Positions 23,843-30,916 of a stretch of DNA of 51,649 nt are shown one piece after another. The stretch covers positions 1 to 51,649 of the forward strand of contig NIVC01002581.1 in NCBI GenBank assembly GCA_002269645.1. The letters run 5' to 3'. Under the pieces are notes generated by a model, which made no database searches, was not told where the DNA came from, and saw only the letters and a list, made by a program, of their open reading frames with translations. The stretch comes from Macrostomum lignano (taxonomy: Eukaryota). Position numbers and translations under genes: made by a program. Position 1 is the stretch's first letter, and the number at the start of each line of letters is the position of its first letter.

Positions 23843-24508
23843 ATGTCCGACAACGGGGACAACCATGCCGCAGCGTCATTGGCTGACGGAGATGCCGCCG
23901 TGCCAGATCAGGACGCAGTCGATGCCGGCGAGCAGCCAGCAGGCGCAGCTGCTGCCGCCGCGCCAGCTCCTAGTGAGCAACTCTTGTTGACTCAAACCTT
24001 AGCCTCTCTTCACCGGATGCTCGAGGAGCGTCTCGCTGTTTCCTCGCCATTAGCGCCAAATTCCTCGCCGCCTGCGAAGCCAGACATACGCCTTCGCCCT
24101 CCAATCGCTTATCAGCCGAAGATGAACTTTGATACGTGGGAAGCTCAGCTTACTTCGTATCTAGCCACTTGCCGCGTTCCTGAGGACCAGAAGTCCGCCA
24201 TTCTCGTATCTTTGCTGTCAGCCGAATGCCAAGAGGTATATCTTAATTACCGGTGTGACCAGTTGCCTTTCGAATCTGCGCTTCGGCTGCTCAGGGAAAG
24301 GTACACCGATGCCAAGAAGAAGGACAAGGCCTACGTAGAATTAGTTGCTGCCGCCCAATCTCATAATGAGCAGATGTCTGATTTCTTCGACAGACTGGTC
24401 TCCTATTCTAGACTAGCGGGTCTCTCGCTCGCTGAAGCGAAGCCCCTACTCAAGGCCAGATTCTGCCATGGGCTGAGGGATAAGGACCTCGCCGAAAAGC
24501 TCCTCTTA
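23843..24508 (+). pseudogene. gag: Gypsy gag, 5' part, interrupted by the LINE
   Basis: ATG at 23843; reads MSDNG...AEKLLL and then runs into the LINE tail and stops at 24523. Confidence 0.9.
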
Positions 24509-24593
24509 CTTACTTACTACTGACGGGGGGCGCAGGCGCCGCGAATAGGCCGCGAGGCCCCTATCGCAACCCCAAGGTAAAAGAGCACAAGGA

Positions 24594-27500
24594 TTAGCCT
24601 TGGGGGTGCGCCCAGTCCCCGCCAGTAGTCGGCAGGTCCGCAGTGGAGGCATCGGCGACCCTCATCCGGCCGGAGTCCCGGACGAAGGCGCGGAGGTCTC
24701 GGATATTGTCCGCGGTGGTCAGCTCGTCCATCCGCTGGGGGTGGCCGAGGTATTTGTGCCGCGCCTTGTTGAAGTAAGGGCAGAAGGTGACGTGATGCTC
24801 CGCGGTCTCCTCTCCTATGCCACAGAAGGGACAGGTGGGAGGGCAACCGGTTTGCAACGATATATGTCTCTGGAAGAATCCGTGGCCGGTTAGGACCATG
24901 CACATCTCCCTGAGGTCGGTTCTGTTAAGCGAAATCAGATAATCAGAGACTTTCCTGTTCAGGTTAGGCATGGCAGAGCGGCTCTGCCTGTACTCGGTGC
25001 AGCTGTTCCAGTGGAGCTGGTGCTGCTGATGGAGCCACCTGTTGATATGGCGGGTGACTTGCGACCTGGGGGTGGGTAGCCTCATCAGACGGTGGTTGCC
25101 GTCTGGGTTGCTGCCCTCCTTGGCGAGAGAGTCCGCGAGCTCGTTGCCCAGGATGTTGCTGTGACCAGGTGTCCAGATAATTCTAATCCTGTTAAGGACT
25201 GAGAGAGATTGCACACTGCGGTGGCATTGAGATACTGTAGCAGCGGAGATATTCTCAGTGGTTAAGGCCTTAATAGCAGCTTGGCTATCAGTGTAGAAAT
25301 TAATGTCAAAATTATTAATGTTCGCCTGAAACAGTTGCTGGGCACACTGCTCAATGGCGCAAATTTCAGCTTGGAAAACTGAGGTGTTCTCACCGAGGTG
25401 CAGACTTTCCTGGAGAAGCATCTTACCCTCGTGGAAAATGGCAATACCCGCTCCAGCGCGGCCGTTGAACAGCGAGCCGTCGGTGAAGCAGTGAATGCCC
25501 TGGCTGCGCCGGTTCACACCGACATCCAGCGGAATGTTGTCTCGGCCAGGGATGGCGGTCTTGAAGCCCCTCCTGATGTTGAGGGCGGGAGGTCGACTAT
25601 CCACATTGCCCAGGTCCATGTGGATGTTGTTAAGGTCGCGGCGGACAAAGTCCATATGCGGGATTAATGTTTTCATTGGCATAAAGCCAGAGGGCGCGTT
25701 ATTTAACGTTTTATCTCTGATAAGCCGGGAGGCAGACTTCATAGCCTCCGCCCTAATAAATAGGTGAAGCGGAGGTAGGTTAAGGATAGTGTTCAGCCCC
25801 TCGTAAGGGGTGGACGGGTACGCACCTGTGATGGCACGGCAAATGCTGCCCTGAAGCTGGTACAGCCGCTGACGGGCGGCCTTCTGCTCCAGCACGCTAG
25901 TCCAGATGAGACTCGCGTATGTGATACTGGGCCGGATGATGCCGGTATAAATCCAACGGACCGTTCTAGGCGAGAGGCCCCAAGTCGGCCCGATGGCTCT
26001 GCGCAGCTGGGCAAAGCAGCGTTTTGCCCGACCGATGACGTTATCAAGGTGCTTCGTCCAGCGCAGGTCATGCGTTAGCGTCACACCGAGGTATTTGACC
26101 TCCTTCTTGAAGGGGATGTTTCTGCCATAGACAGTGAGGTTTTTCATCTCCCACTTACGGCGCTTGGTGAAAACGACAGCGACAGTCTTAGTGACGCTGA
26201 TTTTTAGGCCATGCTGTGTAGCCCAGTCGGCCGCCTTGTCGGCGAATTGCTGCATCAGGTTGCGCAGAGTGGCGGGGTCGGGTCCGCTGACGCCCGCGGC
26301 AACGTCATCGGCGTAGCCCGCCCTGGTGATACTGCTGGGAATGTCAGCGGTTAGAAGTTCGTCCATGACGAGATTCCAGAGAAGTGGAGTTAGCACGCCA
26401 CCTTGCGGGCCGCCTTTCATCACCGCCCGGGTGAGGGTAACGCCCATAAGTGTGGATGTCACAAACCTTTTGCGGATCATAAAATAAATCCAGCGAACAA
26501 TGCTGTGTCTTACATTCCTGCGGGAAAGAGAATTTCTGAAGGAGCGGAAGAGGACATTGTCAAATGCTCCTTCGAAGTCAACGAACAACCCGCAAGCGAG
26601 TTGTTTGCTAAGGATGGCACTCTCAATTTTGGAGGTAATGGCGTGGAGAGCATGCTCAGTCGTCCTCCCAGACTGGAAGGCGTACTGGTACTTACTGACA
26701 GGGTCGGAGCGCAGGTCGCACTCTCGAAGCCTCCACAGGATGAGCCTCTCCATCAGCTTAACACAAAAGGAAGTGAGGCTGATGGGCCGGAAGGATTTCA
26801 CGTTGGTGTAGTCACCCTTAGCAGGTTTCGGGATGAACACGACTCTGGACATTCTCCAGATTGTGGGAATGTAACCTGTGGTATAACAGTCAACAAGCAA
26901 TTTAGAGAAAGAATCAGCAAAGTTTTGCAGCTTTAGCGCCTCCTGCAGGATACAGGGGGCGATATTGTCAGGGCCAGACGATTTATACGGTTTAAAAGAA
27001 TTTGCTGCCAGCTGGAGTAGCTGGGGGGTGGCGCACTGCTGGAAAAGCTTGTGATCACAAGGCCTGTGGTCATCGACCACGTACTCCGGTTCGTCAACCT
27101 GCGGAAAGCAGGTGGAGAAAAGAAGATTTAGCGAACCTTCGGCACTGGTAGTGTAGTTACCATCCAGGTGCAGAAGGGAGTTACACTGAGCTAGCGTGTC
27201 GTGCCTGAGAGTCCTGACCAGCCGGGCTGTGGGGTGTTGCCCTTCCAGGCCGGCGCAGTAGGCTTTCCAGGTGGTCTTCTTAGCCCTTCGGATAGTACTT
27301 TTGTACATCCTCAGAGCAGAGTGGTAGTTCTCCCAGTCCTCTGGAGTATTCGAGCCGTTTGCGAGGCGTTGCAGTCGGCGGGTGTTTTTCTTCATGCGAG
27401 TGAGCTCTTGACTCCACCAAGGAGAGTATTTCTTCCTGCAAAACAGCTTAGGGGCGTTAGCGCGTATGGCGGTGTTTAGGATCTCAACGATGGAGTTGCA

Positions 27501-29883: not shown

Positions 29884-29935
29884 AAAAAAAAAAAAAAAAA
29901 AAAAAAAAAAAAAAAAAAAAAAAAAAAAAAAAAAA
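29884..29935 (+). repeat. 52-nt poly(A) at the 5' junction of the antisense LINE
   Basis: CCCCCC-A52-GGT, followed by the duplicated gag. Confidence 0.97.
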
Positions 29936-29938
29936 GGT

Positions 29939-30916
29939 TTGACTCAAACCTTAGCCTCTCTTCACCGGATGCTCGAGGAGCGTCTCGCTGTTTCCTCGCC
30001 ATTAGCGCCAAATTCCTCGCCGCCTGCGAAGCCAGACATACGCCTTCGCCCTCCAATCGCTTATCAGCCGAAGATGAACTTTGATACGTGGGAAGCTCAG
30101 CTTACTTCGTATCTAGCCACTTGCCGCGTTCCTGAGGACCAGAAGTCCGCCATTCTCGTATCTTTGCTGTCAGCCGAATGCCAAGAGGTATATCTTAATT
30201 ACCGGTGTGACCAGTTGCCTTTCGAATCTGCGCTTCGGCTGCTCAGGGAAAGGTACACCGATGCCAAGAAGAAGGACAAGGCCTACGTAGAATTAGTTGC
30301 TGCCGCCCAATCTCATAATGAGCAGATGTCTGATTTCTTCGACAGACTGGTCTCCTATTCTAGACTAGCGGGTCTCTCGCTCGCTGAAGCGAAGCCCCTA
30401 CTCAAGGCCAGATTCTGCCATGGGCTGAGGGATAAGGACCTCGCCGAAAAGCTCCTCTTATGGGATCAGGAAACCGACAGTGCCACCTCTGCAGAAGAGC
30501 TGATGCAGAAGGCCAAAGATCTTGTCGGGGTCCGCCAGCTTCTGAACGTGCCTTCTACTATAGCCAAGGTTCGTGCCATAGAACCTGACGCTGAGAAGAA
30601 AGCGTTAGAACAGAGGGTCGCTGAGCTTGAGAAGATGGTGACCGACCAAGCCAATAGATTAAGCCAGACCACTCCGCCTGTCACTACCAATCAGGGGCCC
30701 GCTCGCACAGAGCCCACTGGGGGCCCACCACAAGTTAGCCAAACCTATAGACAACCTAGGCCAGCTCCTCGCCCTCCGCGGGCTTGCCATCGATGCGGCC
30801 AGACCGATCACCTGATCGCTGACTGTCCATCGCCCTCGCCGAGGCCACAGTCGCCAAAGCAGCCCCGGGGAGCCAAAATCAGCAGCCCAGCCGTGGAAAA
30901 GTCACGACTGAACTAG
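29939..30916 (+). CDS. gag: Gypsy gag, duplicated segment plus 3' part with CCHC nucleocapsid knuckle
   Basis: 29939-30460 duplicates 23987-24508. The frame continues to CHRCGQTDHLIADC and stops at TAG 30914-16. The reconstructed uninterrupted Gag is 373 aa. Confidence 0.93.
   Translation: MTQTLASLHRMLEERLAVSSPLAPNSSPPAKPDIRLRPPIAYQPKMNFDTWEAQLTSYLATCRVPEDQKSAILVSLLSAECQEVYLNYRCDQLPFESALRLLRERYTDAKKKDKAYVELVAAAQSHNEQMSDFFDRLVSYSRLAGLSLAEAKPLLKARFCHGLRDKDLAEKLLLWDQETDSATSAEELMQKAKDLVGVRQLLNVPSTIAKVRAIEPDAEKKALEQRVAELEKMVTDQANRLSQTTPPVTTNQGPARTEPTGGPPQVSQTYRQPRPAPRPPRACHRCGQTDHLIADCPSPSPRPQSPKQPRGAKISSPAVEKSRLN

Follow-up and report, generated by a model that had tools for sequence, protein, structure and literature searches.

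A 51,649-nucleotide stretch of DNA from the flatworm Macrostomum lignano (assembly GCA_002269645.1, contig NIVC01002581.1, positions 1 to 51,649 of the forward strand; this whole stretch is referred to below as the window) carries a Ty3/Gypsy long terminal repeat (LTR) retrotransposon whose gag gene is interrupted by a long interspersed nuclear element (LINE) in antisense orientation. The LINE is flanked by a perfect direct repeat of 522 bp, and between its 5' end and the right-hand repeat copy there is a run of 52 A residues (A52) followed by the trinucleotide GGT. The structure suggests a natural and very recent outcome of aberrant LINE integration in a young Gypsy element, an outcome of a known kind for which a new mechanism is not needed. 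The explanation that we favour, tentatively and at somewhat less than even chances, is that a full-length LINE cDNA bridged two cuts made by the LINE endonuclease, either on sister copies or by way of a gag flank carried along by 3' transduction. With similar reserve, we propose that the 522-bp repeat may be something other than a classical target-site duplication (TSD).

When the two repeat copies were compared, 522 of the 522 positions matched between 23987-24508 and 29939-30460 and the adjoining bases differed on both sides; self-BLAST of the window likewise gave 100% identity over 522. A perfect direct repeat of this length at a spacing of 5,952 bp cannot have arisen by chance. On the + strand the order between the repeat copies is the LINE (24509-29883, antisense), A52, and GGT. 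Directly after repeat copy 1 the + strand reads CTTACTTACTACTGACGGGGGG..., the reverse complement of the LINE 3' end, and directly before A52 it reads ...GTTTGCCCCCC, which is the end of the approximately 5.4-kb LINE. A52 is the sole A/T run of 12 or more nucleotides in the window. The tail on the LINE strand is ...CCCCCCGTCAGTAGTAAGTAAG (also recorded as ...GTAGTAAGTAAG), followed by a TAAG that is common to the target CTCTTA. As is expected of a LINE, the insert has a short-tandem-repeat 3' end and microhomology with its target, and it has no terminal repeats by self-BLAST. An earlier note on this DNA, made by eye, had described a 522-bp duplication with an offset of 5952, an antisense LINE in a Gypsy gag, a C6-A52-GGT junction, CTTA microhomology with the target and the lack of AATAAA before the A run, and all of these were borne out. 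The duplication is exact, the domains and the orientation of the two elements are as described, C6, A52 and GGT occupy 29878-29883, 29884-29935 and 29936-29938, respectively, the shared TAAG is real, and none of 16 hexamer variants (AATAAA and its variants) was found on the + strand within 100 nt upstream of A52. The anatomy departs from ordinary target-primed reverse transcription (TPRT) at two points. A classical TSD is short (about 5-20 bp, from a nearby second-strand nick) whereas the flanking repeat here is 522 bp, and no shorter repeat abutting the LINE 5' end was found at the 5' junction. A classical TPRT 5' junction has a few extra nucleotides at most whereas here the LINE 5' end is separated from the target by 55 nt (A52 plus GGT).

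Both boundaries of the repeat were found directly 3' of the same + strand motif, CTCTTR^T. Between 23986 and 23987 (site 1) the + strand reads ...AACTCTTG followed by TTGACTC, and after 24508, which is joined to 30461 in the uninterrupted copy (site 2), it reads ...CTCCTCTTA followed by TGGGATC. When the motif was counted in the 9,729-bp Gypsy, skipping the insertion and the second repeat copy, CTCTT[AG] occurred six times on the + strand and CTCTT[AG]T only twice, at these two boundaries. From -12 to +9, sites 1 and 2 are identical at 13 of 21 bases, a score that is reached at 7 of 9,709 positions. The probability that the second boundary landed exactly on CTCTTR^T by chance is about 5e-4, which we take as roughly 0.005 because the motif was spotted post hoc. 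Four CTTA sites within the repeat were left unused by the LINE junction, so the shared motif looks like a cleavage preference and not like mere pairing with the tail. The 3' OH that primed the LINE cDNA at 24508 belongs to the + strand. Since CTCTTR^T is on this same strand, both breaks look like first-strand cuts of the LINE endonuclease rather than one first-strand cut and a second-strand nick 522 nt off.

The trinucleotide GGT is part of a perfect 9+9 inverted repeat that the native site lacks; only TTGA/TCAA is present there, and the interval 23950-24040 does not contain the longer repeat. GGT lengthens the native 4-bp palindrome to 9 bp, for which the chance is 1/64 for 3 nt, and the junction hairpin has a folding energy of -5.9 kcal/mol with a z of -3.8. 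This means that the free 3' end of the - strand, ...GGTTTGAGTCAA-3', doubled back on itself and copied GGT to ACC, and perhaps AA to TT, before the T run was made. It follows from the extended palindrome that the - strand end at 23987 was free and was extended by a polymerase, and that GGT, being templated by this snap-back, is not an addition made to the cDNA once the A run was in place. Read on the LINE strand, the T run is immediately followed by a G6 tract. Full-length LINEs typically have additional G residues at their 5' ends. Because the A run abuts the sole G6 of the LINE and extra Gs typify full-length 5' ends, the A run looks like it sits at the run-off end of a complete LINE cDNA.

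The sequence itself shows how the parts are arranged, that both boundaries have one motif in common, that the filler is templated and that G6 is unique; who made the cuts, in what order the events took place and where the A run came from are inferred. In the explanation that we favour, the LINE endonuclease would cut the + strand at CTCTTR^T at sites 1 and 2, and a full-length LINE cDNA primed by the + strand would be joined to the DNA end from the other cut. This could have happened in two ways. In one, LINE cDNA synthesis would be primed by a cut at site 2 in one of two sister chromatids or homologues, and the cDNA would then join the right-hand end of the site 1 cut on the other copy; this unequal joining would duplicate the interval. 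This variant concerns a single locus because both flanks carry the same Gypsy TSD. In the other, the LINE would already sit at site 2 in a donor copy of the Gypsy, from which a read-through RNA with 522 nt of antisense gag would arise (3' transduction); this RNA would be reverse-transcribed at the site 1 cut of an empty Gypsy copy, primed by homology, and the left repeat copy would then be the transduced flank. In both variants the 5' junction would form when the - strand 3' end at 23987 snaps back on its palindrome and copies 3-5 nt (ACC, perhaps TT). The reciprocal end would then reverse-transcribe an RNA poly(A) tail, with TT:AA microhomology, to give the T run, which would be joined to, or would jump onto, the run-off end of the LINE cDNA (G6). 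The most likely origin of A52 is a poly(A) tail that was copied at the reciprocal end.

The geometry of the insertion allows more than one position for the priming nick. With the right copy starting at 23987, a + strand nick p anywhere from 23986 to 24508 gives the identical final sequence, on the condition that for p < 24508 the LINE is followed, on its 3' side in the RNA template, by antisense gag. When p is 24508 the product is the 522-bp TSD of one of the two models in the earlier note, and when p is 23986 it is a blunt insertion, into a homologous Gypsy copy, of the LINE plus 522 nt gained by 3' transduction. Only the motif points to a + strand cut between 23986 and 23987, the sequence by itself being compatible with every p in this range. 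The intact CAAC TSD, together with LTRs that are identical except for homopolymer indels, places both sides at the same locus.

Several considerations weigh against a cDNA bridging two cuts. The sister-copy variant needs two double-strand breaks and an inter-sister join. The transduction variant needs an unseen donor and a reverse transcriptase (RT) start 522 nt downstream of the LINE 3' untranslated region (UTR), and landing in a homologous element is unlikely unless homology guides it. A poly(A) copy without an mRNA body needs either a jump between templates while RT is still in the tail or a fragment that consists of tail alone. The match to CTCTTR^T was noticed post hoc and comes from two sites. 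Finally, the simplest reading of the - strand is a single cDNA running from a poly(A) tail into the antisense LINE, which favours a polyadenylated Gypsy-sense RNA. We also think it quite unlikely that a LINE RNA with an antisense Gypsy flank was guided by homology into a copy of the same Gypsy, or that the LINE RT makes long dA tails at run-off cDNA ends in vivo, or that both occurred.

The giant TSD proposed in the earlier note invokes a first-strand nick between 24508 and 24509, from which TPRT proceeds as far as the LINE 5' end. It further requires that the cDNA acquire a long untemplated A tail and that the second strand be nicked 522 nt off. This geometry yields exactly the observed product, the abutment of G6 and A52 fits tailing at a run-off end, a snapped-back - strand end in TT could anneal to the A tail, and L1 TSDs and local duplications are known over a broad range. 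However, the - strand at the proposed second nick (GAGTCAA^CAAGAG) is unlike the first-strand site whereas the + strand there is alike, so that the CTCTTR^T match (about 5e-4) is left to chance, and two independent rarities are required. A literature search found no paper with about 50 nt of untemplated dA added by a LINE RT in vivo, and we know of no LINE RT that does this. With the left boundary at a + strand CTCTTR^T and GGT templated by snap-back, the model as written in the note is disfavoured, and we regard it as unlikely. A separate idea, which concerns A52 only and is compatible with any model for the 522-bp repeat, is that the T run was part of the LINE RNA, either as an oligo(U) leader of the family or as the upstream flank of a source copy whose transcript began about 55 nt upstream (5' transduction). 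The A run would then be templated and the TT microhomology would still fit; on the other side, the unique G6 right after the T run resembles the cap-proximal end of a full-length cDNA, and flanks of the poly(A) type seem rare in the window because no other A/T run of at least 12 occurs in its 51.6 kb of sequence rich in transposable elements (TEs). To our knowledge, no LINE family has a 5' homopolymer leader, and we consider this origin of the T run very unlikely.

The earlier note's other model also draws on an RNA as the source of the A run, here a polyadenylated Gypsy-sense RNA from a copy with the antisense LINE at site 2, so that the - strand would be one cDNA of poly(A), LINE and gag, copied at a break in the present gag. 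The same RNA could have been used in a virus-like particle, where the Gypsy RT would leave or run off the genomic RNA at nucleotide 23987, snap back, and switch to the poly(A) tail of a co-packaged truncated RNA, in a manner that resembles retroviral transduction and LTR-mediated retroposition. This accounts for the A run most naturally, since 52 A residues is a typical tail length and T52-G6-LINE is legible as one cDNA. A non-homologous switch naturally yields a duplication, snap-back with TT microhomology fits an end-to-end switch, and zero substitutions in the LTRs and the repeat fit a single event. Template-switch chimeras are known from animal LTR elements, and in some of them the junctions contain 2-26 bp of de novo sequence (PMC5131818). 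Against this stand the lack of a poly(A) signal before the A run, whereas the LTR has AATAAA, and the coincidence that the tail must begin exactly at the LINE terminus, beside the sole G6. Moreover, the nicked - strand end is not T-rich, as a LINE of the poly(A) type would need, the particle version leaves the shared CTCTTR^T motif unexplained, and the donor copy was not seen. On these grounds, chiefly the abutment on G6, the missing signal and the - strand end, the model is disfavoured, and we consider it rather unlikely in either version. An assembly artefact, in the form of a chimeric long read or a misjoin of LINE-bearing and empty Gypsy copies, has the following in its favour: M. lignano assemblies are redundant and contain a great many repeats, Mlig_3_7 was assembled from noisy PacBio reads with polishing that relied in part on RNA-seq, and the LTRs differ by homopolymer indels only, which suggests residual errors. 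An overlap misjoin, however, cannot yield a junction of LINE 5' end, A52, GGT and gag without shared sequence, and the junction bears the marks of biological end processing (snap-back filler, target-motif match and intact reading register), so that an artefact appears most improbable.

Three further routes were tried and rejected. In one, a single + strand nick at site 1 was followed by strand displacement through the repeat and a switch to the LINE RNA where microhomology with its tail was first met; four CTTA sites would have been passed over, the first of them 12 nt in. In another, the LINE cDNA jumped onto a second RNA at its 3' end, in the manner of U6-L1 chimeras and circular LINE products; the polarity is wrong and gives T and not A on the + strand. 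The last, a prior microhomology-mediated tandem duplication that was later hit by the LINE at its junction, calls for two independent rare events and meets zero substitutions between the LTRs.

The insert has the features of a non-LTR retrotransposon with an apurinic-type endonuclease, RT and RNase H, probably of an I/Jockey-like group. Open reading frame (ORF) 2 matched the Pfam domains Exo_endo_phos_2 (2.9e-22), RVT_1 (7e-30) and RNase_H (4.6e-13), no Pfam domain was found in ORF1, and a related gene model has been named 'mobile element jockey' by one source. The ORF1 stop and the ORF2 start overlap in a TAATG (UAAUG) at 28409-28413 on the - strand, and because of this overlap translation of ORF2 by termination-reinitiation is suggested. 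At least 15 M. lignano UniRef gene models are 95-100% identical to segments of ORF1 or ORF2, which identifies the organism and shows that the family is young and multicopy; it also appears to be active. Compared to these gene models, the present copy lacks one nucleotide in a G run, which shifts the frame within the endonuclease-coding part of ORF2 (after ...CANDTPR); this frameshift near 28100 may have inactivated the copy, or it may stem from a homopolymer error in the assembly. Some LINEs have 5' ends processed by a self-cleaving ribozyme (HDV-like, that is, of the hepatitis delta virus type, or twister), and no such match was found here with Rfam in 29300-29960 at E up to 10, nor was any ribozyme found in the window at the Rfam gathering score. 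Searches for further copies gave no match for an exact 27-mer of the LINE 5' end in metagenome, viral and prokaryotic genome collections, no match in an ORF1-guided metagenome scan, and no match in exact-protein look-ups for two homologous gene models and ORF2, and an exhaustive HMMER search with the 76-aa translation of the first 229 nt of the LINE returned only two weak low-complexity matches.

The host element has everything that is expected of a Ty3/Gypsy LTR retrotransposon by its sequence features, namely LTRs, a TSD, a putative primer-binding site (PBS), a polypurine tract (PPT), gag and pol. Its Pfam domains occur in the order zf-CCHC, PNMA-like capsid, Asp_protease, RVT_1, RT_RNaseH, Integrase_H2C2 and rve, and without the insertion gag has 373 codons and is open throughout. 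The LTRs are 99.76% identical by self-BLAST, with zero substitutions and two 1-nt indels in C runs, and because there are no substitutions between the LTRs or between the repeat copies, both the Gypsy and the insertion are very young. Divergence of the LTRs versus that of the repeat was tried as a clock and was uninformative, as all are identical. The two indels sit in C6/C5 runs at approximately 22545 and 22573 of the 5' LTR, which hints at residual homopolymer errors in the assembly, and for this reason the length of A52 is to be read as approximate. Two gag protein searches for other copies of this Gypsy returned none, the first of them probably having been swamped by low-complexity words. 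At 33486-33570 the RT-RNaseH part in frame 1 and the integrase in frame 0 have a short overlap, with gag in the third frame; this change of frame could be a second frameshift site or an indel. Tandem repeats were seen in the leader between the PBS and gag (23094-23493; units of 42 nt and 41 nt) and between the integrase and the 3' LTR (35569-35800 and 36279-36593; units of 81 nt and 25 nt).

Features of the insertion, the LINE, the host element and the surrounding window (a caret marks the boundary)
Feature	Position	Strand	Remark
Repeat copy 1	23987-24508	+	522 bp, gag codons 49-222
Repeat copy 2	29939-30460	+	In frame with remaining gag (to 30916)
A52 (T52 on LINE strand)	29884-29935	+	Pure homopolymer
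Filler GGT (ACC on -)	29936-29938	+	Templated by snap-back
Perfect 9+9 inverted repeat AAGGTTTGA/TCAAACCTT	29934-29952		Arms 29934-29942 and 29944-29952
Site 1, CTCTTG^T	23981-23987	+	Left boundary of repeat at caret
Site 2, LINE 3' junction, CTCTTA^(T at 30461 in uninterrupted copy)	24503-24508	+	CTTA microhomology with (TAAG)n tail
Full-length LINE	24509-29883	-	5,375 bp
G6 at LINE 5' end	29878-29883	-	Sole G run of at least 6 in LINE sense strand
LINE 5' UTR	29883-29335	-	549 nt
LINE ORF1	29334-28411	-	307 aa
LINE ORF2	28411-24594	-	Endonuclease, RT, RNase H
1-nt deletion in G run (GGG to GG)	28098-28102 (approximate)	-	Versus other M. lignano gene models
LINE 3' UTR and (TAAG)n tail	24593-24509	-	
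Ty3/Gypsy element	22255-37935	+	LTRs, TSD, PBS, PPT, gag, pol
Gypsy TSD CAAC, 4 bp	22251-22254 (left), 37936-37939 (right)		
Gypsy 5' LTR	22255-23085	+	831 bp, TG...CA, AATAAA near 22935
Putative PBS TGGAGGTCCCACCGAGAC	23092-23109	+	TGG-type, 6 nt past LTR, read from sequence
gag 5' part	23843-24508	+	Frame enters LINE tail, stop at 24524 (...AEKLLLLTYY*)
Gypsy pol	30979-35558	+	Protease (PR)-RT-RNaseH 30979-33570, integrase (IN) 33552-35558, two frames
Gypsy 3' LTR	37107-37935	+	829 bp, preceded by PPT GGAAGGGAGGCGGG
Minisatellite arrays	2217-3282, 5778-8241, 8588-11270, 12040-12572, 14461-17030, 38813-40846, 41423-42171		

Outside the two nested elements, minisatellite arrays are unusually dense, with periods of 11-61 nt and lengths of up to 2.6 kb, and a 12/24-nt repeat accounts for the long ORFs at 8557-11272, which are artefacts. 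An (AGTC)n microsatellite is present at both 3945-4146 and 49964-50324, 46 kb apart. Just upstream of the Gypsy there is a pair of 110-nt inverted repeats (20620-20729 and 20993-21102) with 96% identity, about 260 nt apart, which may be the ends of a small DNA transposon. An ORF at 45352-46209 on the - strand has fragments of a mariner/Tc1-type transposase (Transposase_1, HTH_32, DDE_3). Two stretches on the same strand are likely exons of host genes, one at 14960-16348 with a fragment of a DHHC palmitoyltransferase and the other at 50322-51509 with a weak match to a rhodopsin-type seven-transmembrane receptor. Rfam placed a tRNA at 47655-47743 on the - strand (58.6 bits, 89 nt, probably with an intron), and ARAGORN in its bacterial mode reported none.

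The second half of LINE integration is still poorly understood, both in how the second strand is cleaved and the 5' end of the cDNA joined and in how a repair pathway is chosen, and detailed junction data come nearly all from human L1 over-expressed in cultured cells. The locus described here is a fresh germline case from a distant animal and from a LINE of the non-poly(A) type, in which a pair of cuts of the endonuclease type, fill-in after snap-back and the copying of an A tract apparently come together in one junction. If this is true, it would suggest that messy outcomes like those of L1 are general to LINEs and are able to duplicate host or TE sequence over hundreds of bp. It also serves as a warning that a long 'TSD' beside a LINE in a repeated element may equally be a transduced homologous flank.

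Each part of this junction can be set beside a known system. In polymerase-theta-type end joining, 3-4 nt of self-complementarity let a 3' end fold back, copy a few nucleotides and so extend a palindrome. The snap-back proposed here is alike; the difference is that a 52-nt homopolymer follows, and we do not know of this pathway making one. In twin priming, the reciprocal 3' end of the target is said to prime a second reverse transcription (Ostertag and Kazazian 2001). There, an internal part of the same LINE RNA is copied and gives an inverted 5' segment whereas here only an A tract is copied and the LINE is uninverted and full length. In LINE 3' transduction, read-through transcripts reportedly carry the downstream flank with them (Moran 1999, Goodier 2000, Pickeral 2000). 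The transduction variant is like this in that the left repeat copy would be the flank of the donor 3' of the LINE. It is unlike it in that the flank would be homologous to the target, so that the 3' junction is seamless and mimics a TSD, and in that priming would be by RNA-DNA homology and not by a poly(A) or microsatellite tail.

A comparison with LTR-mediated retroposition and retroviral transduction gave both likenesses and differences. An RNA-derived LINE plus A52 between the intact LTRs of a young element is what such events produce, and so are a short de novo insertion at the junction and a poly(A)-like tract 3' of the captured RNA (PMC5131818). On the other hand, LTR-mediated retroposition replaces internal sequence whereas here Gypsy sequence is duplicated, and most of its junctions show microsimilarity whereas the right junction here has a 3-nt filler and at most a possible TT (PMC5131818). 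The poly(A) signal that would be looked for upstream of the captured tail is missing here, as described above, the LINE 3' junction is TPRT-like, and both breakpoints share a LINE-type target motif. A further comparison is with non-canonical insertions of L1 and the local rearrangements that L1 mediates in human cells. It has been shown for L1 that, at a break made by the endonuclease, RT can extend each of the two DNA ends on a different RNA, after which ligation yields products in opposite orientation, that a cDNA can bridge two breakpoints, each beside an endonuclease motif, and that 5' junctions carry fillers or microhomology and insertion sites small duplications (PMC11702581). The present case is unlike these in that the element, from a flatworm germline, ends in (TAAG)n and is not of the poly(A) type, that the cuts are 522 bp apart on the same strand of one TE, that the second RT product would be a pure 52-nt copy of poly(A), and that it is one natural locus and not an experimental series. 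Each ingredient of the explanation that we favour, a LINE cDNA bridging two endonuclease cuts, has been seen in experiments with L1 (PMC11702581).

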